From positions 11,842,001 through 11,906,000 of the forward strand of contig OZ241829.1 of assembly GCA_965202585.1 (NCBI GenBank): DNA of 64,000 bases. The letters are read 5' to 3'. The notes beneath the pieces were generated by a model. The model did not search any database. It was not told the origin of the DNA and saw only the letters and a program-made list of their open reading frames with translations. The position numbers and the translations under genes are program-made. This stretch comes from Thalia democratica. Taxonomy: Eukaryota. Position 1 is the first letter of the stretch, and every line of letters starts with the position of its first letter. This document shows positions 1 to 49,500 of the stretch, piece by piece.

Positions 1-310
1 AACCTGCAAACGGTTTGGTGATCTTCAGAGAACAGCACCTAGTGTTGTTCTATTTCTATACTATTTTTTATACTTCACTTTATTTAAAATCAACCTGCAA
101 ACAGTTTGGTGATCTTCAGAGAACACCACTTAGTGTTGTTCTATTTCTATACTATTTTTTATATTTCACTTTATTTAAAATCAACCTGCAAACGGTTTGG
201 TGATCTTCAGAGAACAGCACCTAGTGTTGTTCTACTTCTATACTATTTTTTATACTTCACTTTATTTAAAACCAACCTGCAAACGGTTTGGTGATCTTCA
301 GCGAACACAA
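1..310 (-). repeat. 91-bp tandem repeat of the exon 57 3' end + donor (4 copies visible, likely continues beyond the window)
   Basis: aacctgcaaac(g/a)gtttggtgatcttcag recurs at ~1, 92, 183 and 274. Confidence 0.95.
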
Positions 311-3300
311 CTTCCTTCAGCGCGTTCTGAGCTGCTTCAGCAGTCACCGTGAAGAACTCATCCTTGCACGGGAGGATGTCCTCCCTACTCGGGAAGTCCA
401 CAGCGAAGCCTAGTAACTCCATCAGTCTGTTCACCAGGTGCAGCAGAGACGTGTATCTGAGATAATTATTTAACTTAAAAATTATTAGATGATTCAGGGC
501 AATTTATTAATTTTGTCAACAAACGCAACATAGACGTGTACTTTTTGAACAATTCAAAGTGGTGTGTTCAAAAAACAGAACCGCTAAGTTGTTACATAAA
601 GTCTGATAACAACAAAAAGTCGAAAATAAGCTTCAAAGTCAATTTAACTTCAAATTTAAGTTTTTAGATTTTTCCAAGTTGTGATTGTAAAACTATGTTT
701 AAATTACAGTGGGGCTAGTTTTATTTAGTAGCACTTCAAAAAGTCAAAAAGTAAATGGGTAGGTTAGACTATTACTAATACCATGAATAAGTTTAGAACA
801 TTTCAACAGAGTTAGTTTATACATTTTACAAATTTGTACAAAGTTATAATTTTATCAGATATGTTAAACTAGTTTATTTGAAAACTGCTAGTTTTGCATC
901 AACTATTCCAAAGTGTTAAAAAAGTATATAAAAACCATAGCGCTTACACAAAACTAATAATCATTGCCACTTCAACAGAGTTAACTTTGATACATACATT
1001 GTTTTACAAATGTTACAATTTTAAGAGATATGTTGAACAAGTTTATTTGAAAACTGATAGGTTTGCATAAATTATTTCAAAATGTCAAAACACCATGGTG
1101 CTTGTACAAAACTAACATAATTCTTAAAAAATCATCCGAAAAAAATAATCGCAAAGTTACTTATAGATACAAACAACTAAAAAGTGTGAAACAATCGACT
1201 ACAAACAGTTACTCGTACTTTGATCCAAAGCAAACCTGTTGGACCACGTTTGGTGAGAAAGGACCCTGTTTGCGGGGTCTTCGGGGCAGAAAACTTTGGG
1301 GAAGGCGTCGAACAGCGCTGCGGGGTCGCCATCCACGTTTTCCAGGTTGGCGTACGTGAGCACGACGTTCTTGAAAGATTCGAAGTCCCGCACCTGACTG
1401 GTCATCATGACGAGGGTCTGTAAAGTTGCAAATATAAACTGAATTGTTTAAAGTAAATTTTGCGATATGAATAATGTTCTAAGATAAACCAAGGTAAAAC
1501 ACATGACTAAACACAATTTTGCATTTTATAGTTGGTAAAGCTATAAGTGGTCAAATATTTAAAGCAACTAGTTCTGATCAGAACTGACTTATATAATTTC
1601 AACTAGATTTACTTAAATGTCTTAAGAAAGTTAAAAGTTTAGTTGAATAATTTTTGTAAATTTCTTACTTCTGTTTATAATTAAGAACAAAACAGATAAA
1701 TATTTAAATATTGATTAAAACTACGAGGGTAGTAAAAGTTTTTTGTCTTAATTTATATTTTAAGTTTAAGCTAAGTGCAACAGTTTTTATACTTTTAGAC
1801 GCATTTGTAAAAAAAAGCTTTTTAGTTTATTGTTTTGAAACAAATTAAAATGCTCGCTTATTATAATAAACCTTTATAATTTCGTTAAAAGTAATTAACA
1901 AATTAAATAAAAAAGTTTATAACTTACAACACTATCCTCACATAAAAATGTGCATTAGTTAACATACTTAATGTGCTTACTGGTATATAAAAAAAAAATC
2001 TAAAAATAAATTTGACTATGTTTCAGACTGATTCAAGAAAATTTAACCAAGTTAAAATAAAAATAAATAAAGTTTTTTTAAATTTTTTATAAAGTATTTC
2101 AACTTAGTTTGATACTTTGTTAATTTGACTTCTTTTATGTAATGTGTCTTGCTTCTATTTTACTGTTTAGTACAATGCAAAAGACTATTTGTATCTTTAG
2201 GTGCTTGATAGAGTTTTACTTATTTAATTTTAACTTTTATAAATATTTAGTCTTGTATATGATACGAAATACATATTTTTTCTTAAAGTACTTAAACGTA
2301 AGTTCTGTCAAAAGTAAACAATAGTTACAATGTATACACTTGAAAGCTTTATTAAAGTAGCACTATTGTCAAACATAGTTAAAAAAATTCATTTTCAACC
2401 TGATAGTTTGATCTGATACCGGGAACTTTGTCCAGAGCAGTGGAGCATCTTCCGGAGAAACAGGACACGATCGAGCTTGACATGCATCCGAGGAACTTCT
2501 CAAAACCAGGTCTGAAATTGAAAAAAAAATCAACGAAAACAGAGTGACAAGGTCATTTCTTGAGAAAAAAGGTCGTAACATTTTGTACTTTGTAAGTTAC
2601 AAAAGAATACTTTTAAAAACTAAACAATTGATAATAAATACTACCTGTCAATATTAGAAGTGGAATAGTTAAAGCACTTAAGAGTATATACTTAGTCAGT
2701 TATAACGTAAAATTAAACAACAGTTAATAACTTTAAGGGTCTTAAATTTTTTACAGCACAGCTCAAAATAATGAAAAATTTGATATTCTTTTATAAAAAT
2801 GTAAAATGAGTACAGATAGTTTTTGAGTCTATAGGCACACAAATCAGATGGCTATAAGTAGTAATTCTTTAAGTCTTTTAACTAGCTTCATGTGTTGTTT
2901 GTTTCACATTATTCATTTTAAACTAACAAGCAATGCTGGCTGTTGCTTTTGTAAGGCAGTCCTTCCACGAAGGGTGCTGTGCAATACTCGATCTTTCCGA
3001 GCAAATCTTTGAACGAACAAGAAGGCAAAAATGGGATGTCTGGAATGATAGAGAAAATAATTAATTACACTTATACTGCTAGTGTACTTATCTACAGCAA
3101 AAGTTTTAAAAACATAAGTTACTACTATTTTTCTTTGTAAAAACTTGAACTAGAACTTCTTAAATTTGTTTTTATTTTTAGACTAAAGTGTAGAAAAACC
3201 TTAAAAAATTTAAAGTATATTTCTTGTTAAAAAGTTATCACAAGTCTCTTTTTCTATGAAGACTTGTACAGTTTAACTCTGTCATAAACCTTAAAGTAGT

Positions 3301-4524
3301 CAAACAATTTCAAATGAATTCCAAAACGATTTTAAAAGCGGCAATATCTTCTTGTGTTACAAATAAATTTTAGATAGTTGAAAACAAAAACATAGTATTA
3401 ATTTAGTTCATTTTATATTATTTTTTCAACTGAATAAAACTTATATGATCAAGACTAAAAATATAACGTTTTCAAAAAGTTAATAGTTGTGAATTAAATT
3501 TTTATTTCTAAGCAGGTGTCCTCTTTTTGTGTTCAATGCGAAAGTTTTAATTAAGGTTTAAAAAAATGTTTGCTTAAGTTAAACAGTATTTGATAAATTG
3601 TTAAACTTTTAACCAACCAACTTCTCTTGTGGCTTAAAAACAGTTTTACAGTAAACTTAATTAAACTAATTTTATTTTTATCAACAACAAAACCTCTTTT
3701 GAAATTCTCAGGGGCTTAGAGTGAAAGTAAAAACTATAAATAATTATTTTACTGACTAAGTACTTATTTTTTCAACCACCAACCTCTTTTGGGGCACTTT
3801 TGGGGCGGAGGTGTTTCCTGCATGTCTGAACACTGGTCGCCATGACAATAGTTCATCGTGCAGTTTCTCAGGAAACCCATTCCTGAGTATTCCACGAACC
3901 TGCTCACGTCCTGACACGTGTAAGCCTTCCTGCTACTCATACATTTGCCTTCCTCAATTACCACTGTAAAGAAAAAATAAGTTACATAATTTGATATTTT
4001 TTACTGTTTAGTTAGTTTAATTCTTGTAAGCCTTCATACTGTTCATGCATTTTCCTACCTCTGTTACCACTGTAAAGGAAAAAAACAAATAGTTTGATAA
4101 TTAGCATCGTTTTATGTATTTCTGTATTACCACTAAAATAATAACTTATAAAATAATTAATAGTTTGTTTTTTTATGTGCTTAAACGTTGCAAGCCTTCC
4201 TCCTCTTCATACATTTGCCTTTCTCGATTATTACTGTTATAGTTTTTTTTGTTTTTTTTTAATGTAATATATAATCTTAAACTAACAAGGAATCTGCTGT
4301 GATACGTGTACGCATTTTTCAGACATAAATTTAAAATAAACAATTAGGCATAGAAAACTTTAAAACAAATTCCAACTAACGAGGAGTCTTATTTGAAACG
4401 AGCACGTATTTTTCTGACATGCACAAAAACTCCCCATTGCCCACATTGCAGGGTGTGACGTACGTGTTGTCCTCAACCACTTTTCCGTCCACCACCATCC
4501 TCTTACCAGTCACGCACTCCCTCT
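277..4524 (-). CDS. Module 8 (exons 52-57, last module exon lies outside the window)
   Basis: Exons 4381-4524, 3784-3963, 2928-3039, 2400-2511, 1236-1417, 277-456. Ends at a TGC AG|GTTGGT donor, as the equivalent exon does in other modules. Confidence 0.9.
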
Positions 4525-7500
4525 CTGTAAGGTTGTAAAAATTTAAAAGTTACCACTGTTTCTGTTGTGCATAATGTTAGTAGTTTTGAATTATACATTT
4601 TTCTTTCTTAGTCTTTAGACCAGTGGTCTTCACGGTTTGCATCTGTGCACATTAGTGTGCATAAAGGTAATTTTAGCGTGCACCAAAGACGTAATGTTCT
4701 AATATAAATATATAGTATAATCATTTTATAAAATAAGAAAAAATAAGCAAAAGGTAATTGTACTATACAAAGTACTTTATATATTTTTTTTTATTTTACA
4801 CTTTAAATCGTTAGACTACAACTTTTTAAAATGCTCAATATCATTAAATTTTAAAACGAAAAGATTTAAATCACTGATAACAGTCGTGTTTCTTTATATT
4901 TATTGACAACTAAGTTCATAACAATGCATATAGTATAAGTCTGTCGTTCAAAAAATGATAGATTTTTTTGTAAGATTCTTGTAGTTCTTTAATAGATTTA
5001 TGCAAACTATTCCGACCGGTTTCGGTGGCGAAAAATTGCTACCTTTTCAAGCAAAAACATTAAACTGCATATAACAATGTTAGTTAATAATGCTGTTATT
5101 TAAAAACTTATTCATGCGTGAAAAGTATAAACAATAACTAAAGTGTAGTTCTTTCATATAAATGTATGAAAACCTCTATCGCATCCGATGAGCTTCTTGT
5201 TGTCGGCAAAGAACTCATAATAAAAAAATAAAATAAACTTATGAAAACCTTTATCGCAACCGATGAGCTTCTTGTTGTCGGCAAAGAACTCGTACAGTAC
5301 CCTGGTTGCTGTTTCGAACTGGTAGGCGTACTCGTGGTTGTCCGGGTACTTCCTGAACAACTCCTGAAAGTTGACCACGTCCTTCTTGGAGCACCCGTGC
5401 CTGTAGATCAGCTTCATCAGCTTCGTGAAGTAGTCGTACGCTCTGTTGATCAGATTTTAATTAAATGCATATAATATTAAATATTTAAATAGAAAAAAAA
5501 TTTAAATTTTTTTTTTCACGGTTACTTTTGAAGTAGTCGTACGCTCTGTTGGGAGATAAGTGTATTAAAGTTAATTTTTTTATTCAAATAACGTTTTTAG
5601 TTTTCTTTGATTAAACCTGAAGCCAAGAGTTTTTTTCTTACAAATATTTTTTTTTGTTTTTAAATTCAAATCAAAAATCAAGTTGTTTTTACAACTTAAC
5701 CTAATCTCTAAAAATGCTTTTTAATAATTTTATACACCTAACAAAAATAAAAGTAAGAAGAAAATGAGTAAACTTAAACGTGCACATAACTGCTTAAAAA
5801 CAAATTCAAACAAAAACAAACTTGCAAATGTCGTTTTTGTCCTGAGCCCTGGCAAGTGAACTGTACAGGTTCTTCTGCAGTATAGCAGACAATGTGTAAA
5901 AGTTGTAATCGCAAGGAAGAATTTGCTCGATCGTCGGAATTTCCACTTTGATTTGCAAGCTGTTGAAGAAATCCTGTGAGAAAAATTGTTTACGTTTCAT
6001 TAAAATCATTTTTTAAATTGTTTTTGTCACTAAAAAGTTATTAAAGTTAATATTTGTTTTTACCTGTGCCATCTTGGTAAAATCGGTTGTGATTATCAAG
6101 GGTTTCTGGTACTTTCCCTCCTTATCGGGGCACAACATCACCGCTTGCTCCAGATCCTCCAGTAGGGTCGCTGTTTCCTGGAAACCTAGCAACCTGAACC
6201 TCTTGACTATTTCCTCCACTGAACTAACCTCGTACATCACTTCTCGGATGGTCTGAAAAAAAATGTTAAGTTTAAATTAAATTAGATTAAGTATTTAACA
6301 GAAGTGAATTCATTGTTTATTAGTCGATTAAAAATAATAATTTTGTTTCTAGAACTTTTATGTACGAAAATAAACTGTTATTTATCTATGTCGTTTTGAA
6401 TTTTTTGTATGATAATTTCGGAAAATCACAATACAAAATTTTCTTATCTAATTATTTTATTTCAATAATGCTTATTATATCTAATTTAAATTCACTATTA
6501 AAAGTATATAAAACGTTAACTAGATAAAATGTTTAATAGACTATGTTTAAGTACATATAAATGTTATTTCTTAGTTCAATATATTATATGTAAAGGTTTT
6601 AATGAACTTACGTAAAATCATTTTATTACTTTTATTATTCTAACTTAAGTTAAAACTAAAACATAAATAATGCTACAAACTTAGCATATCAAAAATTACC
6701 ATGTAAGTGAATCTCATACCAGGAATATCATCTAATACAGTTGGACATCTCCCACTCAAAAAATCAACAATCACCTTTGACAGACACTTTATTGTATCTG
6801 TACTTGCTTTTCTGTGTAATAAATTGTTTACTAGTATTTGCTTGATTTTATAGAACTACTTTGCATAATACTTTAATTCATCTACAATTACTATAAACAT
6901 TGACTCGCGTTTAATTATTTTTTTGGAGCTACATTTTAGTTAGTCTTTTTTTTTTGTTGTTTATAAAACATAAATATAATTGGTTGTTTTGAAAGAAAAG
7001 CTTTTCGAGTACTAGATAAACATAGTTGAAAAAAGGCAAATTAAGCACAAAAATATACAATAAAAGATGAATATATTACATTCATTTTTTTTATTTCTTT
7101 TCTTTTTTTGGGTGGCACGCATGCACCAGTTTCCCTCCCTACGCTACGCCCCTGGTCCTTAGTAAACTTGCTTTTATCTTTATATTCTATAACGTTTGAT
7201 AATATAACATTCGCAGATAAATTAAACATTCAAGTTTCAACCTCTGATAATTTACAGTCTGGTTTGTTAACTAAAGTTTTGTCTGTACATAACTTCATAT
7301 ATACTATTTCGGTTTGTTATAGAGATCGAAATAGTTTCCATCGTAAATAAATCATTGAACAAGTTACTGATCTACCTAAACTTAATACTACTTTAAACCA
7401 ATTAAAACTAACTTTATACACTTACGCGCAGCTCTTTTAGCTAAAACATTGTGCTAAACATTTAAACTAAGTAAACGATTAGAAAATTAGTTGTATTGTA

Positions 7501-10500
7501 TATTATAAAACAGTAACTAGATATTATTTGAATGTAGTTGATAAAAATTTACAAGTTGGTAAGAATTTTCCAACTCCCCTCATCCAAAGTTAGATATATC
7601 AAGTACGAAAAAAAACAAACAAATAATCTTACACTTACAAAAGTGGTTATTTGTGCAAAACTTTTAAGTAAACAACTTGGAATATTTATATTACACATAC
7701 ATGAAGAGACTCACTTGCAGCTTTCCGGATCATTGGGCAGTGATGCGATGTACGGAGCGAAGCAAACCATCAACCCGTCCAAACTCTCCCTCAAGGTGGC
7801 ACCAGGTAACAACTGCATGCCTACATTTTTATCTGTTTGTAAGAGGGTGAAATTACGTATGAAGCTAGGATGACGTCACTTCAAATAACTGATTTGTTTT
7901 GAAGCTCGAAGCTTTTTTATGATGGGTGTTTTATTTTTGTTAAGCTCATGGTTGTTGGGTTAGTAACGCTTGCAAGTAAAAAGTAATAGTTTTGTTGTAA
8001 AATGAACTATTCCACACATGTAAGTATGCGTACGATTTTTGCTAAAAATGAACAATTTTTAACAAAAAAAAAAACTAAAATGTTCTGTGTGTTAGTCTTT
8101 TTACTAGTTTAAACTTCTAGTTTAAGTATGTTAGTATCATATAAAAGTATTTTCAAAGTATGTTAGAATCGTTGTAAATTACGTATAAGTTTTATAAGTA
8201 ATACAAAAATTATAAATGTTTAAAGACAATGTTAGTAGTGGTTTTTTATCGATTATAAAACAGTGCAGGAAGCTAAACAGAATAAAATCACTAACCATAA
8301 AAACAAAATCCTAAAAAACTTAATCCATTTAAAACAAACTAAACACTAAAATATTTTGTAAAGCAAATTTAAAAAAAGTATTCTAATAAACAATTAGTCT
8401 TATCTTAACAATGTTTTATTTACAAAATCTCACTTAAGGTACATCAAGAAAACAGTAAAATTAAAATAAAAGAAGTCAATAATTTTTGAACTCAGTTTTT
8501 TTTCTATTCACTCGCAAACTAACCATGAGGTAGCGGCTTGCAATCGAGTGGCAGTGTTGCCTTAAGTGAAGTGCACATGTCCGTAGAGCAAGACTCAGTT
8601 TCGCACTCGGTAATTTCCCCTCTTCCCATGACGTCATTGTACTTTATGACGTCATCGCAGGTGTAAGGTTCGTGGGCGGGCATGCACATTCCGTATTTGA
8701 TGTCGACTGTTGATAACGGTTGTGAAATATAAAAAATGTTTAGTGCTGTTAAAATTTTATAAAATGAGTTTTTAGCACGGCCAACTTTGTTGTCGACAGT
8801 TGACATTTTTAGCGTTTATTCTAAATTAAACTAAATCATAGAACAAATATAAATAAAGTTGTTGTCAAATTTTGCGAAGTTAACTCCTTAAGTAAAAATT
8901 CTGCTAAACTATAATTTAATCATATATATTCTATAACATGTAGTGACATATATTAGTTCGTTTGTTTGAAAGTTTAAAGATTTTAATACTTTAGATGTGT
9001 TCTCTGACAAAACTTATGCTTATACATATTTAACGATTAACAGAATAATATTAACTAATTTCTACTATATTTTGTTTACTTACAGTTCTGCAACTATTAG
9101 AGAAATAATAAGTATAGTTTTGTCAACATAATCATCCTAAGAAAGTTTATTTTGTATAAAATAATTATTTAAAAAAACTGAGAAAACATTTTTAATTAAT
9201 AAACAAGTAATTATTTTCACAACAAACGTGTGGTGTTGTCAACGTTCATCTTGTATTTTTTCATCTCGCATCTGTCAGAGGGATTGGGGCAGATTGTGAC
9301 GACTGTGTTGTCGTTTATGACGTAATCACCCATCTTTGTTACGTCACCCGTTACGCATCTTCTTTCTGTTGATTAATAATTAATAGGTTAATTTTACTAA
9401 ACTTTATACTTTATGATCATCTATGTAAATAATTTTTGCTTTTAATAATTAAGTATGTATATATGATTTGAGATAATATTCTTGTGTATTGTTAATTAAG
9501 TTTTTAATGCTTATATAAGTTTTGTAATTTCTATTTAGATAATAACACTAAAAACCGTTGAACTATCGGTTGAAGTTTTGTTTTTGTCAAAGTGAAATCT
9601 ATCTTAGCTTAAAGCTGTAATAACTTTTAAAACTTTACTAATTAAAACAAGGTTGTATAAAAAGTTACTCCGAGATTAGAACACTAACAGGCTTTTAAAA
9701 TTACTGTAGTATATAGTACTTATATATTTATTATACTGTAAGTAAACAAACTGTCCATACCTCCTTCACACTGGAACAAGTTCTTGTTGTTTTCCTTGTA
9801 ACCCTTCAGAACTCTCACAGCTTTCTCAATGTTCCTCTGTCTCTTTTCCTCGCCTGTTGAGAAGCAGCCGACCTCCAGTGTTTCCACCAAAGTGTCGAAA
9901 AAGTACTCGTACGATCTTCAAGTAATAATTAATACTTAACTTCTCTTAAAGTTAACAGTTGTTATGGATTTTGAAGTATTCATACTTTATTTATTTTTTT
10001 AGGAAAAATTCGAACTCAAACCTGCAGTACTGCAAGCTTTTACTGAGAGATGCAAACTCAATCTTTCTTCTCTTTAAACTTTCGCTTTTTTCCAAATCTT
10101 TTACACAATTATTTTCCGGCTGGACGTCTAATCCCGTTGATAACAGCAGTTTGTACATTTCTTGAAAAAAAATAGTTTGTAAGCTTCTTGAATAAAAAAA
10201 GTATTTGTACATTTCGTAAATAAAACAAATATGTTCCTTAAACATAAAATTAGTTTGTACATTCGTTTAATTCACAAATCAGTTTGTAGATTCCTTAGAT
10301 AAAACAAATATTTCTAATGACTTTAGTTTATACATTACTTATAAACAAAAATAAAGTTTATTTTTTGAACACAAAATTAATACAAAAAAAATTGTGAGTT
10401 TAGTTTTGTACTAAATACATACAACGAAAAAAAAAACTCCTAAAGAAAAACTTTTCAATTTTCTCAAACTTCTTCGAACACGATATTTCAAGTTATAAAC

Positions 10501-13500
10501 TTTTGACCCAATTAAAGTGCTTGAAACTTCACTTAACGTGGTAAATCTTGTATCAACTTATAAAAAACTATTTTAGATTTTTTATGTCATTAGAAAATTC
10601 TCAATGTTATCCGTATCCCGTATCGTGAGGCCAGCTATTTTACTTTTTTAAATAAAAGTACTTTTATCCCTTAAAATATTTTAAATTTTACCAATCATTG
10701 TACTATGAGTATTAGTAGTAACTTATGAAAATATTTTTTTAGTTCTATTAAACCAGGAAAAAATAATCTCAACATTTTCCGAATCCGAAACCTTGAAACC
10801 AGGTGATCCATGGAATTAATATTTTTTTAATTTTCTAGACTTTTTACCAAGAGTCTAAACTCATATAGCATCTTAATTCTTTTCAATTACTATTAATATT
10901 TACCTTCTCCGAACCCAATACCGTGAAGCCAGTGATCCATAACATCACGTGACGATTGATCATCATCGTGACAGAAGATGTCGTAAGCGCTGCTGAGTAT
11001 TATGGATGAGTTCGCGAATCCCATCATTTGTATCCGGGAAGCCATCTCCGTGAAAGATGTGGCATCCTTCACTATCTCACGAAACATCTTTAGATTAAAT
11101 ATATTTTATATATTTATGATGGTTTTTATAACTGCATATATATATATTAATCAAAGTAGAGGTTATTTTATCTCCATAAATTATGTGGCATCTTTCAAGA
11201 CCTCACGGAACACCTAAGAGTCGTGTTTTTAAAGAATAGGAAAGTTAATATTTGTTGGGATTTTATAAAGATCAAACGAAAAAAAAAATGCTTAATAAAA
11301 CTTTGATTAAGAAAATTAGTTAAACGACAAATACTCATTTTCGAAGTATTTTTAATAGCAGAAACATCTTAAGTTTTTTATTTACTCTACTAACCCCGTA
11401 ATATTCTCTAAAACCGGGGTAGTCGTCTAAGAATGTGGGGCAATTTCCACTGAAACAATCGAAAGCTTTCTTGTTGACACACGTCATCATTACATCAACT
11501 GTATCCCTGTGTATTAATTATGTGCTATTTGATGTAGTTAGCTGTATAATTTTCTATCATTAAAAAAAGCTTTCAAAGTACTTTTGTGTGTTAATTAAAC
11601 CCCTTTAAAGACAGTTATAATTTTTTATTGTTAGATTTGTCCTGTATGTTTTTACCTATTATTAAAAAAAAAATCTATGAAAGGTATTTATTCAGGTGAA
11701 AACTAAGTATAGAAATAAGCTATGTTATTTTTTTGTTTGCCGTTTATAGTTTAAGTTTAGTCATTAGTTTAGTTGAACAGGTAAAAATAAAGTTTGATTT
11801 CAGAACAGTAATTATAAATCTAAAACAAATAGTTTGCTTGAAACTTATGAGCGTTCAACAATTTTTACTGAGGTTCATTTTAATTTTTATTGTCCTGGAC
11901 AAGACGTTAAACTGTATCTAAGTAGTGTACGACTTAATAACCAAAAGCTTTTTTCATACACTAGGTCTTAGGACCATTGTTTTTTATCGTTCATTAAACT
12001 ATTATTACTTAATTTGAATACTCAATAAACAAATTTAAACCTGCACAGTTCATTACTTGCAAACGGTAGCATTGTGGTAAATTTGGACGCGCATTCATGT
12101 ATTTCTTTAGCTGCATCAACCAGTGAACAACTTGGCATGAAAAGCATATCTGAAATATTATTATAAAATTGATATTAATGTTATAATTATTATCAAATAA
12201 TAAATTAATATGTGCATTCATGTATTTCTTTAGCTGCATCAACAAGTGAACAACTTGGCATGAAAAGCATGTCTGAAATATTATTACTGAAGTGTTACTA
12301 ATATTATAACTTATATTAATTAATGAATTTATATGTGCATTCGTGTATTTCTTTAGCTGCATCAACAAGTGAACAACTTGGCATGAAAAGCATGTCTGAA
12401 ATATTAATATTGAACTGTTACTAATATTATAACTTATATTAACTAAAGAATTTATATTTGCATTTATGTTTTCTTTAGCTACATCAAAAAGTAAACAACT
12501 TGGCATAAACAACATCTCTAAAAAAATTGTTTTAAAAGGTTAAAAAAATACCTTGATAAAAAATATGATGTTCTAAGAAGTTTAGAACTCTTTTGACCCA
12601 TTTGGTTTGTTTGAACTAACTTATTTTTAGATGTTTTAGCTAAAAATTTGTGTTTAGAGCTTTACTTTACCTGTCACTTTTAGTTTCATTTTGAATTAAA
12701 AACGATTTAGATAAACAAATGTTTGAGATAAAAATAACAAGCTTCAGTTACAACAAATACTAATTTTTACAAGTACTACATTATCAAACAAACCGTCATC
12801 ACTTTCAGTTTCACAGTTTTCAGTGGAGGTCCTCCTTACTATGCCCTCATTGCAATTATCGTGATCGCACAACTTAACACTGCAATCGGAAACTTCACCG
12901 TAGTTCTGCATCTTGCTGTACTCGTACGCCATCTTGCAGTCGTCCTGAAGTTGCATGTCGTTCAAACAGCTTCCCACCGTTACTTCGACTGGAAAGGATA
13001 AAAATTTCAGTTAAAGATAAAAGCATAAAAAATAAGTTGATAAGCAAGCGTTACTTTAAATAGAAAGGTCAATAAATAATAACCTTGTTTATAAACATAA
13101 TCTTATGTCAAGTTATGCTCCGATAGTCAGTTTGACAGGAAAGAATAACTCGTAATGGTTAACTTCAAATTAGACTAAATAATATTATGTTAACTATGAC
13201 TTCTATACTTCGACTGGAAGAATTATTATTTGTATTTACTAGTATGAAACAGCATAAATTTAACAAAGCTCTATGTTAACTGTTGTGTTGAGAAGTTATA
13301 CTGTTTAAAACTTAAAAGCAGAATATTTTTTTACTAATTAGTATTGTGCTTTATTGTTATATTGCTCATGTCTTTTAAACGTATATACTTGTAAAAATAA
13401 ACAAAAACTGTGTTATTTATTACTCAAGAGGAATTGCAAATTATCTTTTAAATCTTGTCTTTTACAAATATGTGTTGTGAACAGTTGTTTCAATGGCTGT

Positions 13501-37500: not shown

Positions 37501-40500
37501 TTTATGGTATTTTTTATCTTAAGTTTGTTTTTTACAGTATTTTTTATCTTAAGTTTGTTTTTTACAGTATTTTTTATCTTAAGTTTGTTTTTAGTATTTT
37601 TGACACCTTTCTTAGTTTAAAACAGTTCAACGGTTAGGTTTGTTACAGCTCTGAGGAAAATATTCAACTTGTTTTCTACTTTTAATATTCAAGTTAAAAT
37701 CAAATCAAATCAAATTTATAAAATTATCAAAATCAAGCAGCATCGTAGTTATTAATCAAAGTGTTGAAATAAACAAGTTGATCGAAAATTTTAGTTATGT
37801 TTATTTAAACCTCGTAATTTTATAACAGAGAAAGGGTTTAAATTAAAGTAAGCACGTTAATATCTGCTAAGTGTTAATGTTAAACTAGTTTTTAAACCAT
37901 TAACATCACTATTGCAATTGCTTAAACTGTTTTATTAAACAACGACAACTAGCTGCTAAAAGTTCACCTGTTTTTTAGTCAACAGTCGATTCGCTAAATA
38001 TAGAAAATTTTGTTGTTATCTAAAACTGTTTACTTATATTTTAATTTACACTTGATTTGTGAAGAAACAGTTATAGGTTTCTTTTGTAAAAGAAAAACAA
38101 ACTACTTTTTTTCAAAAGTACTTTGAACAGACAAACTTTCGCTTAAACAGCTCGTCAGTGCTTAACATAGATACTAGAATATTAAGATTACGATGAGAAG
38201 AAATAGAACAATGTTATTTGAATGAATAAGTTCCCATTTTGATTACTTTGAATATTTTGACTAAGTGTTTAAAAATTATCATTAAAATAAAATATAAAAT
38301 AAACCACTGTCGCATCCTAGCATATTGTATTTTGCGCAAACCAGCTTTTTAATAAAAAATAAAGTATTCTATCAATGTTTATAACTGTCATATTTCACAA
38401 CTGAAACCAACCGCTGTCACATCCTGGCATCTTGTAATTTTACGATAAGAACTTCTTAAAACCATCTACTTTTGTTTTATGATTATTTTTTTTAAGTTTA
38501 AAACGGTCAAAAACTTCTTGCAAATATTTTAAAGATTTCAAGTCAACGGCAAAAGTATCATGAACGTATTTATTTTAACGTCATTTTTTAATCAATTTTT
38601 ACAAATTAGAACCAACCCTGATCGCATCCGGGCATCTTGTAATTTTGCGAGAAGAACTGTTCGATCACGTCCAGTCCCTCGCTGAACAACCTCGCTGCTC
38701 CGTCACTCACTCCCATCTGGTTGACGATCCTCTCAATCCTGATCCGCGGATCCGACTCGCAGTGGGTCACCTTCAGCTTGTTTATCGAAGCGTGAAAGTC
38801 CTCGTATGTTCTGAGCAAAATGATTAGCATGGCATTACTATTTATGTTATAACTGCAAAGATATCATAAAAAATTTTATAACTGAATCGTACTTAAATTT
38901 ACCTACAGTTGTTGTTCAGATCAACTTTATGCTGTTTAGGAAAAGTACATAAAAATAATAAAAATATAAACTTTCTTTTTTAAACTAATCTAACTTGGCT
39001 GAAAACCAATAGTTTATAAATTTTCTGTTAACAACAGTGTAAATTTCACCGACTTGCAAAAAGATTGGTGACTGGATGCGCGGGAAAACCCGTCAACGGC
39101 CATTTTGATCTCCTCCTTCAGCTTCCTGGGGAATTCCCTGGTGCAAGGCAACACGTACTCCAGTGGGGGAAGCATGAACGCGGACTCGAAACTTTTGAAG
39201 AATTTCTCCAAACCGGGAAGCACCTCCGCAACTACGTACCAAATTTCCCTCGCCTTTATATGAATAATATAAATAATAAAACCAAGGATTTTTTTATTAA
39301 TATTTTATTTAAACAAATTCAAGTAATTTGAAGTATTATTACTAAGTATCCCTTAGATGTAAAATTAAACAAAAATTAAACTATTATATACAGCTTAATT
39401 TTGATAAAGTATTTTGATTTAAAACTTATTATTTTTTTAAATATTACTAAAATCAATCCCTCTCACCCGTTCTTTTTCTGCCTCTTGTGGGCAGAAAGCC
39501 CTAGTAGCGTTCTTCAAAAGTTCCACGGTCAAAGGGGAATCCCAGAAATTGAGACGATTGTAGGCGTCTTCCACCGAAGTCAGGTCACGTGTCATCTCTC
39601 TCACCGGCTGTTGAGTAGTTTTTTTGTTTACTTAACACTAAGCTAATTTTTGTTCATTAACTTTTAACTTGGTAAAAAAACTGGCTTTTTAATATTTTTT
39701 ATTTTATCAATTCTAATACTGGCTGTTTACTTGGATTTTTTTTTTCAATATTATTTTACTTCATAAAAAAACAGACTATCGTTGTTTTATTTTTTCTCGT
39801 CATTTCCTTAGACTTACTGTTGAGCTTTAAAGTTTTAATTTAATTCTTGATAAAATATGTTTACTTGTTTTATTTAAACTTTATGATATGCTTTAAAGTT
39901 AACGTAGTGTTTATTATATTGTATCAAAGAAACGCATTTAGATAAATAGTTTCGTTTAATATTTTTTTATGGAAAATAGATTTTTGAGTTTTTCTTTTCT
40001 GCAAAATTTCTGCAAAAAAAAAAAAACTCATTTAAAACATAAACTTCAAACATCTTGTGGTTATTTTAAAGCTGTACTTTCAAAATCAAATACAAACCTG
40101 ATAGAACGATCTCAACCCAGGTAGCATATCAAGAACAGTTGGGCAAGTTCCCCACAAACAGTTGTGAGCTATTTCTCCCATGCATAACAACATATTGTCC
40201 ACATTATTGCTGTGAAAAGTTTTTGTATTATTTAATACTTTTTTTTTACTGTTAGGTTCAAATATTTCAAAAAATTTATGTTCAATTTCTCCAAGACCTA
40301 ACAATACCTTACCGATATTGTTTCTGTAAACGGAGTGTTGTATTGGTTATTGTTTAATACTTGTTTTACAATGGTAATGCTAGTTAGTTTTAAAAATTTT
40401 TTTACAAGTCATCCAAAACATAACAGTATCTTTTTTACGTTGTTGCTTGAATATAAATTTAAGTTATTTTATAACTAGTATTTCAAATTACTTTAGTTAA

Positions 40501-43500
40501 TTTCAGGTAATAAAAAATATCTCATTCAAGAATGTTTCTGAAATCAAACTAAAAAAGTATCTTACCTAAGTCATAGAAAAGTTTTTTACTTTGAACGTTT
40601 TGATAAGAAAGTTAGGATATTAAACAATTAGATTTGCGAATACAATATCTTCAAGATATAAAGCATATTTATATCTTAGTTTAAGCAAAATTTATATCAG
40701 CATAAACATGATTAACGAGTAGAAAAAAATAATCAAATATGCTGCTGTATTTTTTGTTTGACATTTTTACAGAAAAAGTTTTTATTTATTAACACAGCTT
40801 TTGCATATACTTCAAACTAGTGTATGCCATGTATGTTTACATGGATATATAATTATTGATGCAAAAATGCTCGTTAATTTATACCGCTGTTGCAAAAATT
40901 TGGTAATAAAATACCTTTAAGTTGTATCTACATGTAAACTACTGGTAATTATAATAAAAAACACGAACTAATACATGGTTTTTTTTTCAGAGTTCGAAGC
41001 AAAAACACAAAATTTATTTAAATTAAGATTTCAGTTTATTTTGCAAAATGCTAACAATCTTCATCTAGTAAAAGAAGAAGCATTTAGTATAAAAAAGTAT
41101 GTAAATGACAAGCCTGAAGATTTTTAAAAGGTCATATACATGACGTACACAGATGTACAGAATATTTAAACATGCACCAAGATAAATAATCACTTTTTTA
41201 AGTTCTCAGACGAAAATAAAGACATACAAACAAATCCAAGTATGTAACAGTATGTTTTACAAGTATAAACAAGTCAACACGAAAAATGTAAAACATGTTT
41301 TTAATAACTTATTAACAAAAATTTAAGTTAAATATCACAAAGTAGAATATTTATAAAAGTTTGACTAGTTAGGTTACATATAGTTCAGTTCAAACACTTT
41401 TAAGCTGTACTACAAAATTAGAAACATTTGTGAAACATAAATTATATGGTTGATAAATATTTTAAAACTATAAATTGCAAATAGAAATTCTTTATCACGA
41501 TAACAGAATTCATTAAACCACTTTTCTTTTATTAGAGAAGACAGTATTTTTTTAAGGTAAAACATAACATATGAATGTGAAATACGGTTTTAAAATTTTT
41601 TAACTAATTTAAGCTTTTTTAAAAGCTGCATAATATAAAAGTATTCTTTGTTGTAGACATAGACGAGAAATATAAAATAACAGTCAAGTAACTTAAGATG
41701 ACATTAAAAAATAATCACAGTAAACGGAAGCGACAAACTAAACTTTCAAAGTATCAACTTACTTGCATTTTTTGTGAAACTTTGAGCAACATATATATAG
41801 TTTGTAGTAAATACTAATTTATAATCACCATATCGCTAGCAAAAATGTATGCTACCAATATATCAACTCACTTGCAAGTATCTTGTGAGCTGTAGGGGAA
41901 TTCTGTGAGGTATTGATGGGTGCAATGAGACATCTTTTGTATGAGATCTCTGAGAGTACAGCTAGGTAGAAGTTGCAAGTCTGTTAAATTACATATTCAC
42001 TTATTTTATTTAAAACCGTTTATACATTATAATACTTCTGTTTTTACCAAGTTTAAAGTCTGTTTATGTGTAATGATGTTTTTAGTTATTATATAAAAAT
42101 TTATTAATATATTGATATAAAAAGTAATATTTATGTTTATATTTTAGTATTTTTTAAAAACAAACACAAACAACAGACTAGATATGTTTCGCACCTTAAG
42201 ATCAAAAACTTGTTATTACCTTCATACAAATTATAAGGAAAATTTTATAATATCTGTACTTTTGATTGTTTTCAACTATATGTTGGTTAATGAAAAGTTG
42301 TATGTCTGTAAAAACATTCTTGTTGTCTGTAATGTGAAAGTTGTATTTTAGTGACAAGTTTATGTTTTTTGTTATACCGTAAAATTTTGTAAACAAATAA
42401 AACAAGTTCAACTAAGCTTAATCATGTCAAGTTCTGTTTTATAAAAAAAGATTACAGTTACATTTATTCATTGTTGTAAGTTAAATTTAGAATCTAGCTT
42501 TTAAATAAGAAATCATTTTATATTACTTATATTAAAATTTAAAACATGCTTATTAAAATTATCACATTCATCTCGTTGGGGATTTATCTTCAGTTCAGTG
42601 CACATGAGTAAATAAATTAACAAAAAAAATAATTTAACCAAGTTACCATTTTCAGGAGTATCGCACTCATCCCGCTGAGGATTGACTTTGAGCTCCGTGC
42701 ACATATCCGCGTAGCAATGATGCGTCCGGCAGTTGGTCATGGACTCGTTCCTCATCTCCTTGAACATCTCGATCTCCTTGCAAGTGTACAAGTCCTGAGG
42801 TCTCCTGCAGTACCCGCCTTCGTATGTGTCTGCGGGAGAACTTGAAATTAATTAACAAGTTTTATTTTGACGTTCAACATATTTAAATAAAAATAATGAT
42901 TAAGTTCTAACTATTCTATTTAAGAAAATTCAAACCTAAGGCAAAGCTAACTACTTCTATTTAAAAACAATTTTTTAGTTAAACAAAATAAAGAAAAATT
43001 TAATTGCTTACACTTTTTGAAGTTAAAAAAAAAAAATTAGCACAAAAGTCAGTTGATTTTTTATTTTGTTTATTAAACTTACATGTGACACCATTGTCAA
43101 CATACTGCAGGGTTTCATACAAACAGTAATAATCGGGTCCTGGACATGGGGTGACTGCCACGTTGTCATAGATACCGAACACTCTGTCCCCAGTAACACA
43201 CGTTCGCAATCCTTGAAAAAAAAAATAAATATTAAACTTATTTAATATACCAAACTTTTTGAAAAATAAAACTTAGTAGGAGTTTAAGTGTGCAAAAAGC
43301 TTTATAAAGCCATTGTCTGGATATTTTTTACAAAGAAGTCGTATAAACGGGTAAAATATAAACTGTATAAAAAATAATTAAAAAGTCAAGTTTGTAAGTA
43401 AAACAAAAATGGTGTCCACATATTTGAGGTTGTGAATAATAAAAAAGTACTTAAAATTCTTGTTTTCTATTTAAAAAAAGACTTAAAATTTTATTACCTG

Positions 43501-46500
43501 GGAAGCCGGCAAAAGCACTGCCTTCCACAATTATACTCTCAGTGGGTGTTTCATCAACTTTCTCATCAACTTTCTCATCAACATTTTCAGTAACTTTCTC
43601 ATCAACATTTTCAGTAGTTCCAGTTGTCAATCCAGATCCTTCGACAGATTTTTCCCCAGAACCAGTTTTGTCTGCTTTTTTTTTTGCATTAAATAAAATT
43701 TAATTAATGTACAAATTTGTTTGTAATGCATTTTATTTTTTTCAAACTAATTAGTTGTTATTTATGCAACGATAGCTGCAAAACACAAAACCTTTTAAAT
43801 TTAAAACAATAAATTAGAAGTGCGTATAAATTTATGAGAAATTTATTTAAAACAAAAATTGACACTATACTTTTATGTTGTCTTACATTTTTTTAAAGAC
43901 TTTCAAAAACATTAAACGAATGTTTATCATTTATGTTTTCTCTGTGCTTCTGGTAATACATCGTACTGATGGAGTTTTGTATGGCTTAAGTTGTAAAAAC
44001 TGCGTTTAGTTAAACCTTTTAACTTGAGCTTAAACCGAGTAAGTGCATTAGTCTCAAGCTAAAACGATTGGAATACAGACTAAATGCTGTAACACACATT
44101 AAAGTACTATAAGGCTACTTTCTATAGCAAACCGCATTAGATTATTTTATGAAATTTATTTGATTTCCTCTAATTTCGTTTGTAAAACAAAAGTTCGAAT
44201 ATCGATAACAACTTTTTTTAAACTTTTTTATTCAGTTTTAGTTTATTTCAACTTTTAAAGCTTAGTTTTAAACTACCACTTATACTGGTCTTAAAACTTT
44301 TTAAACTCATTAGTCACAAGCCTAAACTGCTCAACTACTTTTAAATCGTCGAGTTACAAGCTAAAAACACCAAAAATTTACTCTAAGAGCTGGATAAGAG
44401 CTTACCACTCAAATCGCAGTCAGGAGCCTGTAGATTTTCGCTGAAAAACCGGAAGACAATCTCGAGTCCCTTGTTCAAGTCGAGAGCTTGCTGCAGGTTC
44501 AAACCCAAGTTGTCTCTGATCTGGTTGACATTGATCAGGTCGTTCGTCTCGCAATATTGTTGCTGAATTTCCACCACTTTAGTTGCAAAGTTGCTGTAAA
44601 CGCTGTGAAAAAATAAACTTTTTTCAGTAAGTTGTGTAAAAAAAAGTTTTTAATACTTTTATTTTAGCCGTTTATGATTAACAGTTGTTAATAGATTTTA
44701 TTATATTAAAAAAAACGATTAAAAATTTTAATACTGTTTATCCACCTATTTTGTTGCAAAGCCGCCGTGAAAAATTTGATAGGTTTAGTTTATTTTAATT
44801 TTTAAACTTTTTTACTTAAACACTGTAAAAATTTTTATAAGTTTAGTTTGTTTTAGTGACTTGCATGTTTACATTACTGCTTACTATTAAATATTTAAAA
44901 ACTGTTTGCAGTGAAACATTTGTCAACAAAGTTTATTTTAAGTGTTGAATATTTATGATAAAAATTATGCTAAAAACGAAGACTTATAAAACAAAAGCGG
45001 AAGTTAAAAATGAACAAGTTTTGATTAACATTTTTGACGCAAGTTTAAAAAAAAACAACGCAATCAATCAGAAACGAAAAGCTTTAAAATTACCGCTCTA
45101 ATTTTCACGTTAAAAGTTCATTTGAGATGTGAAAACCTTGGCTTCATTGTAAGCTCATTAATTATTACATTTCACTTTAAGCGGTTTATAAAAATGTTTT
45201 TAGACGTCTAAACTCAGTTTAACGGTTATCAAAATCTATTTTTGAACAAATCTGAATTTAATTTGTCAAAAGGCGTTCGTAAAAAGTTTACCTTGTCAAA
45301 AAAAAAACGTGTCTCATAACTCATTTAATAAAACCGAATAGTTTCAATGAAAGCTTTCTTTCTTTATTGTTAAGATTTTTCAAATGACAAAAATATTCTT
45401 TACATTTTCTATTTGACAAAACACTCGATCAAAATAATTTATCAAGGAATTTTTCAAAATATAATAAATAAAATGCATTTAAGTTTGTTTTATATACGTC
45501 TTGTTTAAAATATAAGATATATGTTACAATCGATTTTTTCAGAGGAGAAATTTTATAAGAAATTGTAAAATAATTGCTAAATAAACCACACTTAGAGTAA
45601 AATTACCAAGTTATGAAATTTATACCGAAAAATGTACTCAATAAGTTCAAAACAGTTAGTTTTAAGTTTCAAAGTTGAAGCTAGTTTAAACGAATATTTA
45701 TTACATAATAAGTAAAACGTTGAAAATTACTACTATGTTTCAAATTGTTTAGTAGTAATTTATTTTTGGTAGTATGCACTAGTATAAAATGTTTACCAAA
45801 AGTTTCATTTGTTCGGTAAACGCTAAACACTTTTCTAAAAACTGTCAAAACTTAAATTTTTTTTGAAATAAATAATTTTAGATAAAACGTTGATTTATTA
45901 CTGAAAAGCTTTCGAAAATTGTAAATTAATCAAAAGCGTTTCGATATAACCTCATCTCAACTTTACATTACAAACACCAGCAAACACATATATTTTATTT
46001 AAACGTCACAACTAGCTATTTGTGCAAATTTTCACAACAATTTTTCTCTGAGTGTATATATTACAACAAACCTGCAAAAAGCTTCATGATCGGGTAATTC
46101 CCTCATGTTTTCAAGAAACATGTTCACCAAGGGAACCAGATTCCTGAAGAATTCATCCTGGCAACTTCCTATCTCGTGTAGGTAGGGTACCTGTTTTTTT
46201 GTTTGAGTTTTTATTTCAACAATGTAAACTCTGCAATAATTTTCAAGTTCAACTACTCTACTGACTGTCGTTAAAGATTGCTGAAAAAAATTAATTTAAC
46301 TGCGCTTAAGAAGTTACTAGTATGTTAACTAATTTTAACTGAGAAAAAACATTTTGTAATGTTATAACATTAATAATTTACAAAAAATCTAGACGAAAAA
46401 AGAAATTATGCAAGTTAGTGTCTAACAACAGTTAAAAAAAATAAATCAGATAACAATGACCTGATTGATAAGAACTGCTTTTAACAGCGAGCATATTTGA

Positions 46501-49500
46501 AAATTTTAAATATTTTTTCTTCTAAATCAATAGTTTTAACTGTTTAAATATAAAGAAAAACCTCCAAAAGGAAAACTATTTACCTTAAAACTCAACGCGA
46601 AAGCCTTAAATATTTCATCAAGAAAAAAAAAGTTACTTCTAAAAAAATTTTTATTAGTTCAGCCTTTAGAGTAATATTTTAAAGTTTTTGTTATATTCTT
46701 TTAGTTAAAATTTTTAATCAATTTATTGAAAGTAAAAAACCTAAAGCTATGAACACTTCACCAACCAGAGGGTGAGAAAAAACGTTATTTTTTAATTTAA
46801 ATTTACTGGTCCAACCTTTTAACTAATGCATTATAAATTTATCTTATATGTTTATCTGTAAGTTAAATTAAATACTCAAAATGAAATGTTTAGATTAGCA
46901 TTTACCTTGACGCTCAACATTAAAACCTTAAACATCTTAACGGGAAAACTAAAATAAAAACTTTAATCTTAAACAAAGCTTTATCATTTAAGCTTTTAAA
47001 TTAATGTTTCATAGTTATCATATATTCATAGTAACCAAACTGATTTATTGAAAATGAAAATTCACCCAAGCTCCTTGAATATTTTACTAAGCACGGGGGT
47101 AAACAGTTAAAAAGTTATTGTTATAAAACTAATAAAAAAACAAGAGCATTAATTTATAAACAATAATTGGTGGTTTGAATTAAAAAATATACTATTTTTG
47201 AAAAATGAGTCTGACAAAACTATACTACTTTTCAACTTATTTTATTAAAACACCAAACTAATTTATTGTAAATATAAAATCACCTTCACGCTCAGCCCGA
47301 GAGCGTTGAACATTTCGCTCAGCACCGGCGTGATGTAAACCGCGCCCCGCCACTTGCTGATGACGTCATCCAACTGCTCGTCATCGGGGCAGAAAGCTTG
47401 CAGTACGGGTTCCACGTAGTCGGCCAGCTCGGGGAAGAGGAGTTCCTTCATGCGCTGCACCATCACGTCGACCGACAGCACTTGAATCGTCAGCTGTCGG
47501 ATGTGCTGTCAAGGTTTTTAATTAATTTATAATACATCCTGTTGAAAATTTTTACTGATGTCTAAAGAGACTTATAAGAAACAATTTTAAAAAAACATAC
47601 TTGAAAAATTCTATGGTATTGGTAGCTTATATGATACTTTATAGTTTCTTACAATTTGAACTTTACGCCATTGTTACGTCATTGACATATTTTGCTAAAA
47701 CATAAGTTCTGTCAGTTCTGAACTAACTTAGAATGTTAGCTGCCTGATGTATTTTTATCGCTATTTTCCAGAACAAGGTAAGAAAAATTATCAGTTGTTA
47801 GCTTAGAAAAGATTTATAATTTAAACAATTGTATTTATTTTTTTGGTGCGTTATTAATATACTTTCCACTTGTAAAATATTTAAAACAAGACCAAGTTTT
47901 TCTGTCTAAAAGTGTTCAATGAACTTAATAGTACATTAATATTTAGTATATTTAAAATAAAATAAAAACTGATGCTACACATGTTTTCTCAGTGGTAGTG
48001 TTGAAAAGAAGCGTATATAAACATATTTATTTACGTAAAATTATATCTTTAAAGCTTAAATGACAAGTAATAAATTGATAATTACCGAGTACAATGAACT
48101 CTGCTCTTGTGATATTTGTGATAATTTGACTAAAAAAATTCAACATTTACATAAAACAACGCAGTTAGACTTCGTGCACTTATCTAAAAAGTTTTAGTGC
48201 TGAAATATATGCATCGTTAACTCATACCCCGTAGCATCGAACTGTAAAATACTCATACTTGATAACATAATGAAATTTATTTAAAGTATTTCAGCGCTTA
48301 AAACACACTCATCGTTTGTCGTCACCAAAAACTTCTGACTTGAATGTTATATATATATTAGTTAAATGTTATATATGTATATACTAGTTGTCACCAACCC
48401 CGTACATCGAACGCATGCCTCTGACGTCATCCAACGCGGAAGGGCAGGTTCCTTGCAAGCACTCGTTCAGCATCTTTGCACTGCAAACCAGCATCCCCTC
48501 CGCTCTCGTTCTGATAGAGTTGTAACATATAAATGTGTGTAACTATGTGTACATATGTAACGTCCATACGCATCTTGTTTTTATGTTTTATCGTATTATT
48601 GTAAAAAACCAAATGAAGATTTGTTTTGTTCTGAAGTTTTAAATGACCCTCCGTGCAAAACTGTCACTCGTGCAAAGTTGACTCTTTGTGCGAAATTGTC
48701 TTCGTGCAATTTTGTCTTCTTGCAATTTCGTCTTCGTGCAAAAGTGTCTTCGTTTAATTAAACCCCCTCGTGCAAATTTTCTTCGTGCTATTTTGACTTG
48801 TTCCCATTTATGTACATTTATCTACAGTTTAAAAAAAACTGTCGAATTCAAAAAAAATGCAATAAAGTTGTTTCATATTTTCTTTTGAATATAATTTCAG
48901 CTTTTTAAACTCGAAACGATATATTGATATAAACACATATTGCGAAATGTTTGTTTGACAGACTAATAGTCCACAATGTAAAAATTTAAACTATTAAAGA
49001 ACAATTTAATGTAGTTTTGATAGCGATCAGTCTGTAGAAACTTAATGTTACAATTGTTTAAAAATTGTTCGTGCTTTATTGAAAGTTCCACAAAAAAGTC
49101 ATTGAAAAATTAACTTCTAGCTCGTACCAAGTAGTGAAAATTAAATTTAACAAACAGAACAATACTGTCATTTACATAAAATTTTCAAACATTAGTTTAA
49201 ACTGTTAGTTTACAATGAATGTCAGATAAAACCAATTTATATCCGATACCTATTAGCTAAATGAGCATTTTATATCTTAAGATGAAACAACTCAGTAAAT
49301 TTATAACCTGCAGTTGTACATTTAGCACGAATTTTCTACGTGAAGCATTTACAATAAAAACTTGAGTTTTTGAAAACTTTTTACAAAACACTTCGCTTCC
49401 TTAACATCGATGGTTAACGTTTTTTAAACTAACTCCGTTAAACAAAATAAAAAAATTAACCTGCAACTGTTGTTATGCTTGTAAGGAAGTTCTCTGAGGA

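Follow-up and report, generated by a model that had tools for sequence, protein, structure and literature searches.

The 64,000 nucleotides (nt) of Thalia democratica analysed here (assembly GCA_965202585.1, contig OZ241829.1, positions 11,842,001 to 11,906,000, forward strand; hereafter the window) carry a minus-strand gene composed of at least eight modules of ~350 amino acids (aa) each, in which six introns per module are fixed in position and phase while a further intron, interrupting the segment that encodes a helical domain, lies elsewhere in every module. The locus raises the question of how eight copies of one exon came to be split exactly once each, at eight different positions. When realigned, the eight sites stay distinct, and in a distant relative the homologous segment is a single exon. 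The history towards which we lean, with some reserve, is that the exon was ancestrally unsplit and that its copies acquired introns separately once the modules had multiplied.

The modules were assembled from stop-free pieces by splice-site and phase rules and are named M0 to M7, corresponding to modules 1 to 8 of the preliminary description. Each is laid out as seven exons (E1, E2, E3, E4, A, B and E6) with ~1086 coding nt per module, and since the gene extends past the start of the window, M7 is without E6. Clustering of the stop-free pieces yielded five well-conserved recurrent exon types with eight copies each, and helical pieces that are weakly conserved. E4 measures 112 nt in all eight modules, and E3 measures 109 nt except in M6 (106) and M7 (112). 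The six fixed introns with phases 1,1,2,0,-,2,1 hold in the assembled modules as previously described, and the longest exon of the gene model is indeed 257 nt (M4 exon A), as had been noted for the coding exons of this gene. The helical segment was likewise recovered as split once per module at the lengths first proposed: all eight A and B pairs were found, with AG before, GT after and an open frame, and their sums from M0 to M7 are 341, 341, 329, 332, 338, 323, 341 and 362 nt. The gene and the variable introns with their flanking exons are as follows, sites being given as nt of the alignment described below.

277-52028, minus strand: modular gene, part inside the window; eight modules M0 to M7, joined frames without stops
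47505-47284, minus strand: M0 exon A, 222 nt; seen in related contigs L006 and L007
46191-47283, minus strand: M0 variable intron, 1093 nt, phase 0, alignment nt 261
46190-46072, minus strand: M0 exon B, 119 nt
39607-39467, minus strand: M1 exon A, 141 nt
39254-39466, minus strand: M1 variable intron, 213 nt, phase 0, alignment nt 165
39253-39054, minus strand: M1 exon B, 200 nt
34317-34143, minus strand: M2 exon A, 175 nt; without indels in L010
33915-34142, minus strand: M2 variable intron, 228 nt, phase 1, alignment nt 226
33914-33761, minus strand: M2 exon B, 154 nt; without indels in L010
19932-19763, minus strand: M3 exon A, 170 nt (164 nt with the alternative donor)
19420-19762, minus strand: M3 variable intron, 343 nt, phase 2, alignment nt 218
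19419-19258, minus strand: M3 exon B, 162 nt
16010-15754, minus strand: M4 exon A, 257 nt; holds the second conserved Cys; transcript contigs
15530-15753, minus strand: M4 variable intron, 224 nt, phase 2, alignment nt 299
15529-15449, minus strand: M4 exon B, 81 nt; transcript spacing exactly 81 nt
11087-10904, minus strand: M5 exon A, 184 nt; transcript contigs X5 record 22 and X4 record 17
10161-10903, minus strand: M5 variable intron, 743 nt, phase 1, alignment nt 220
10160-10022, minus strand: M5 exon B, 139 nt; transcript contigs X5 record 22 and X4 record 16
6252-6064, minus strand: M6 exon A, 189 nt; seen in related contig L005
5974-6063, minus strand: M6 variable intron, 90 nt, phase 0, alignment nt 228
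5973-5822, minus strand: M6 exon B, 152 nt
1417-1236, minus strand: M7 exon A, 182 nt
457-1235, minus strand: M7 variable intron, 779 nt, phase 2, alignment nt 200
456-277, minus strand: M7 exon B, 180 nt

Transcript contigs confirm one outlying site (M4) and one site of the central cluster (M5), and both agree with the exon pairs first described. A 1550-nt contig from the same organism (X5 record 22), placed on 12988-12794, 12149-12040, 11505-11395, 11087-10904 and 10160-10022, joins 11087-10904 straight to 10160-10022, that is, exon A to exon B of M5. For M4, X5 record 24 and X4 record 21, the latter an independent marine metatranscriptome contig, cover 16011-15754 and continue at 15033, with exactly 81 unplaced nt in between, the length of M4 exon B. 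Spliced contigs came from X5 and X4 only; in runs X1 to X3, labelled 'rna', introns are as deep as exons, and these runs therefore behave as DNA. Run X3, labelled organism B, and the run of organism A cover the exons and introns of 10018-16014 to a similar extent, which implies that the labels A and B denote very close relatives or the same species.

Contigs of related species, all from ocean metagenomes, provide additional evidence on the exon borders. Codon-like conservation begins and ends exactly at the acceptor and donor of M0 exon A in L006 and L007, and does the same for M6 exon A in L005, while in the close relative represented by L010 both M2 exons are free of indels and the stretch between them has indels of 2, 6, 4 and 35 nt. 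In a leave-one-out comparison, all open-frame GT-AG alternatives of each module were scored with a profile made from the remaining sequences, and the junctions of the preliminary description ranked first in seven of the eight modules (first of 16 alternatives for M0, of 3 for M1 and of 13 for M7; for M2 it is the only open-frame model). The M3 junction took second place, 0.2 bit below a model whose donor lies 6 nt further upstream without a change of phase, and this donor might be the one used, giving an exon A of 164 nt. No open-frame alternative moves the sites to one common position. The M1 and M7 junctions are predicted from sequence logic.

An alignment of 12 sequences, the eight modules and four unsplit homologous segments, was then anchored on the two invariant Cys of the helical segment, its conserved Trp and its conserved hydrophobic-Gly motif; an alignment of full modules together with single-exon fragments had misplaced the helical fragments and was discarded. 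The eight sites stay distinct, at nt 165 (M1), 200 (M7), 218 (M3), 220 (M5), 226 (M2), 228 (M6), 261 (M0) and 299 (M4), with 3, 2 and 3 introns in phases 0, 1 and 2 respectively. Thus the residue-anchored alignment does not merge them onto one or two positions, and the manual grouping is upheld: the four modules thought to cluster within ~10 nt in three phases (M2, M3, M5 and M6) do so, and the four placed apart (M0, M1, M4 and M7) sit 18-81 nt from this cluster on both sides. M0, M1 and M6 each sum to 341 nt, the length of the relative's unsplit exon, yet are split at nt 222, 141 and 189 respectively; consequently, indels cannot reconcile the sites. In M1 the conserved Trp and the F-x-x-F motif are found in exon B, whereas in other modules both are in exon A. 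The coding sequence flanking each variable intron is colinear with the unsplit homologues, and the variable introns are clean intron insertions or deletions with no exchange of sequence between exon and intron. The AlphaFold model of the helical segment is all-helical (predicted local distance difference test score, pLDDT, 80), and when the alignment was mapped onto it by hand, six of the eight sites interrupted one long helix, indicating that the intron positions ignore structural borders.

An exhaustive profile search over 1.84 billion representatives returned seven real matches only, the family being very sparse. Four of them (P0001-P0004) are single-exon reading frames almost identical to the window; three (P0006, P0007 and P0010) are from relatives at 64-77% protein identity, and P0005 is a 1091-aa protein of three modules from a marine metatranscriptome catalogue, for which no contig of origin was traced. 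P0008 and P0009 were rejected as spurious repeat proteins, and L009, the sole match of a Joint Genome Institute (JGI) metagenome scan, as a false match of GC-rich bacterial origin. Word-based searches with P0005 and a 20-row profile gave no further homologues. P0011 is a reading frame on L001, a 2.5-kb ocean metagenome contig on which E3- and E4-like exons in matching phases precede the unsplit helical segment, a 347-nt exon at 1934-2280 (cag| / |gtgagt). P0012, found by searching with the helical segment of P0005 module b, lies on L008, a 720-nt metagenome scaffold; here the helical segment is one 341-nt exon at 127-467 (cag| / |gt), 100% identical to P0005 module b. The preliminary description had proposed looking for an unsplit exon in related species, and these two provide it, with the neighbouring introns conserved and in the same flanking phases as in the window modules.

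The sample of L001 (as copy L004) is that of L008 and yielded no window-like contig, and the guanine-plus-cytosine (GC) content of the introns is 33-38% in L001 and L008 versus 25% in the window; this assigns L001 and L008 to a different organism. With 208 bits, M6 and P0005 module b are each other's best match, and M5, M6 and M7 match P0005 modules a, b and c in that order; the comparison with L001, for which a peptide of ~190 aa read from the contig was used, gave weak support. Identity is 25.7% among the window modules and 26.5% to the modules of the relative, and since these values are so close, the module array is older than the species split. The M6 variable intron is missing from its reciprocal-best homologue, the L008 exon at 127-467. 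The fixed introns are thus common to all modules and to the relative, while the variable intron is not.

From this we infer that the direction of change was gain and not loss, and that exon length plays a role. The helical segment would have been a single ~341-nt exon while the modules multiplied, with the six fixed introns already present; later, in the lineage to this genome, individual modules would each have received a separate insertion in that exon, each of them keeping the coding sequence colinear. The independent insertions would number at least five (M1, M7, the central cluster, M0 and M4) and up to eight. Only insertions sufficiently distant from the old splice sites would have survived, and the halves of a split exon would no longer have drawn or tolerated a further intron, leaving exactly one per module, near the middle. 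The insertions are not recent, since the M0 and M6 sites are common to the relatives at 64-77% protein identity. Nor does random insertion account for one intron per module: if eight introns were dropped at random on ~1086 nt per module, all would fall in the helical exon, one each, with a chance of ~2e-7 (hand arithmetic). The crowding of the sites in mid-exon is, on balance, best attributed to selection or to a mechanistic bias for splits remote from the old splice sites in the longest exon. An exon-size ceiling, which the preliminary description had suggested, is treated here as a hypothesis; the relative tolerates exons of 341-347 nt. That description had left repeated gain and repeated sliding side by side. 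Its ancestral exon of ~340 nt is supported by L008 and L001. Sliding fares less well: over a long range it is unlikely for M0, M1, M4 and M7, because both flanks of these introns are colinear with the unsplit homologues, and over a short range, from one older intron, it is possible for the four clustered modules.

Several points weigh against parallel gain. Direct RNA support covers two of the eight junction pairs (M4 and M5), and the polarity is set by two modules of one outgroup organism, the only distant one in the protein and contig collections; intron loss in the lineage of that relative is also conceivable. Inspection of the eight introns revealed no trace of how they were inserted. Four of the eight sites fall within 10 nt, which has p = 0.007-0.04 under uniform placement, and the sites crowd towards the middle of the exon (mean split fraction 0.56, standard deviation 0.10, p = 0.001 against uniform), as they would also do if a single central intron had been inherited. 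Finally, the tree of the modules is star-shaped and long-branched, and the order of events therefore cannot be read from it.

It is this crowding that gives weight to another history, which we regard as possible but clearly less probable than parallel gain. The founding module would have had one central intron, retained in M2, M3, M5, M6 and perhaps M7 and shifted by sliding over 2-10 nt, while M0, M1 and M4 exchanged it through gain and loss, and both modules seen of the relative would have lost it. Inheritance predicts exactly one intron in each module, and the four central sites (218, 220, 226 and 228) do cluster; moreover, M2 and M5 are both in phase 1, 6 nt apart and with equal Trp-to-Gly spacing, and near intron pairs with sliding as the origin of their positions are documented in Drosophila (PMC2891723). 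Such a history requires, however, ~3 slides, 3-4 events of loss plus gain and 2 precise losses in the relative that spared both neighbouring introns, versus 5-8 gains, and parallel gain is preferred because the inherited intron needs more events. The cluster, in addition, contains three phases, the introns have no remaining mutual similarity, and surveys back sliding mainly over 1 nt (PMC3488318).

Two further explanations were considered. A helical segment that ancestrally had introns at many or all positions, with each module losing all but one, would require no gain, and intron loss is common, but with eight sites in a span of 135 nt the ancestral exons would have measured 2-40 nt, dozens of losses would each time have had to stop at exactly one intron, and the relative has none in the segment; we consider this explanation highly improbable. 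That the scatter is an artefact of wrong splice-site choice, the real junctions coinciding, draws on the limited RNA coverage and on the 6-nt ambiguity of the M3 donor. It is scarcely credible given that the transcript contigs confirm the most different kinds of site, an outlier and a member of the cluster, that the conservation borders in relatives agree for M0, M2 and M6, and that the leave-one-out ranking, first in seven of eight tests, offered no open-frame alternative with a common position. Parallel gain into an unsplit exon is thus retained as the preferred history.

As to how the introns arose, in a blastn comparison with the window the eight variable introns matched their own internal repeats and otherwise gave only a few short, weak matches elsewhere in the window (35-57 nt, E 7e-5 to 1e-3), none of them between the eight. 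With no sequence common to them, there is no sign of an introner family. The spliced-exon junctions are ordinary, with AG before the intron in seven of eight and G after it in five of eight; AG|GT at the exon junction occurs in M0 and M3 only. Copies of exon edges are present in three of the introns: in the M0 intron the end of exon A recurs in decayed form at 47100-47062; in the M5 intron two decayed copies correspond to the exon A end (10811-10775) and the exon B start (10263-10244); and the M7 intron has an internal 126-nt repeat and, at 540-525, the start of exon B once more. Their order fits duplicated junctions ('mirages') and not an origin from a duplicated piece of exon. The signature of gain by tandem duplication, in which the intron start resembles the downstream exon start and the intron end the upstream exon end, was not found, though old signals could have decayed. 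Local duplication at the splice junctions of this gene is very active. A broader proposal, which we hold to be unlikely, is that long exons in this genome are split systematically near the middle, local junction duplication or another targeted process making introns and exon-length selection keeping one. If true, the eight modules would be eight replicate runs of exon-length homeostasis.

Repeats derived from exon edges also occupy other introns of the gene. Within 25335-29278, in the M3 intron between E3 and E4, there are ~30 copies of a 132-bp tandem unit consisting of the 3' part of E3 (..YECAALYATD.PY.DLNNCK) and the donor, a 'mirage'-type splice-junction minisatellite. At 12091-12506, a 123-bp unit repeated 3.4 times comprises the acceptor and the 5' part of M5 E3 (..ISDMLFMPSCSLVDAAKEIHEC), and the transcript contig uses only its last copy, at 12149-12041. 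Many other exon edges have 1-3 decaying intronic copies of themselves, after or before the edge (1-308, 36340-36564, 17061-17379, 5174-5260, 35069-35146, 4020-4258, 30330-30467, 42516-42704 and 19930-20283); the edges copied include the donors of M7 exon B, of E2 in M2 and M4, of E6 in M6 and of E4 in M2, together with the E2 acceptors of M7 and M3, the end of M1 E2 and the acceptor of M3 exon A. The element at 11885-11954, in the E3-E4 intron of M5, is a very high-copy repeat at which many contigs break, its contig word depth being ~49,000-69,000 in two DNA-type runs versus ~100-300 nearby.

The gene belongs to an undescribed family, and Pfam gave no match with single exons or with the 1091-aa homologue P0005. 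Each module has a putative three-finger-like domain first and then the Cys-containing helical domain. The whole-module model is of low confidence (pLDDT 60), with an N-terminal beta domain of ~110 aa and a helical remainder; a fold search with the helical segment returned no match, nor did the helical part of this model. The beta domain resembled CD177, uPAR, erabutoxin and activin-receptor-like structures with Foldseek probabilities of 0.9-1.0 and low template modelling (TM) scores, and language-model features point weakly to uPAR/Ly6, so that the three-finger-like assignment of the N-terminal domain is a low-confidence prediction. The window is very AT-rich (22-34% GC in 2-kb windows), and within the gene the GC content is 25% in introns and 49% in exons. 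Between M0 and M1, outside the gene model, a stop-free minus-strand stretch at 43454-43699 encodes an acidic repetitive peptide (..ENVDEKVTENVDEKVDEKVDE..) and may be an extra linker exon. Just upstream of M2 E1, at 37309-37592, a 30-bp unit is repeated 9.5 times, with the minus-strand open frame (KNT[VI]KNKL[KN]I)n.

Few clear cases of intron gain are known from animals, and whether sliding is real is still under debate. The locus supplies eight internal replicates in one gene with six unchanged introns per module as controls, at least two positions that are stable across related species, and an unsplit homologous exon in a distant relative. Given more tunicate genomes, it could show directly if the longest exon of a repeat gains introns independently and if the places where they persist depend on exon length.

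Lineage-specific intron gain and turnover have reportedly been found in the fast-evolving tunicate Oikopleura (Edvardsen 2004 and Denoeud 2010 are said to describe it). Oikopleura is also known for an even phase distribution and many species-specific introns (PMC3488318, PMC3096672), and the variable introns of the present gene are similar in that their positions are not shared with relatives and their phases are evenly spread, but here six old introns are fixed and only the longest exon was hit, a single time in every one of its eight copies. For Drosophila, near intron pairs and sliding have been described (Lehmann et al. 2010, PMC2891723). M3, M5, M2 and M6 resemble such pairs, their sites being less than ~32 nt apart and never together, with four mutually exclusive central positions within 10 nt and in three phases; the difference is that they belong to eight ancient paralogous modules of one gene and not to orthologues. 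An order of older and derived sites, or similarity between introns, which would mark sliding, was not found among the eight introns on the unresolved tree. According to reviews, sliding by 1 nt is accepted and longer moves have little evidence (PMC3488318, PMC3096672), whereas four sites here are 18-81 nt from the cluster, exceeding known sliding. The pattern typical of parallel gain, an unsplit outgroup exon with common flanking introns, is seen in L008 and L001. An upper exon size under exon definition has been discussed (PMC3096672), and the sole exon to receive introns would be the longest of the module (~341 nt), with splits near its middle, although the relative keeps exons of 341-347 nt. 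Tandem copies of exon edges, as in gain by tandem duplication and in 'mirage' minisatellites, are abundant in the introns of this gene, but those in the variable introns are ordered as duplicated junctions. Taken together, these comparisons present the locus as a clean, replicated case of a known type of event, with no new mechanism.

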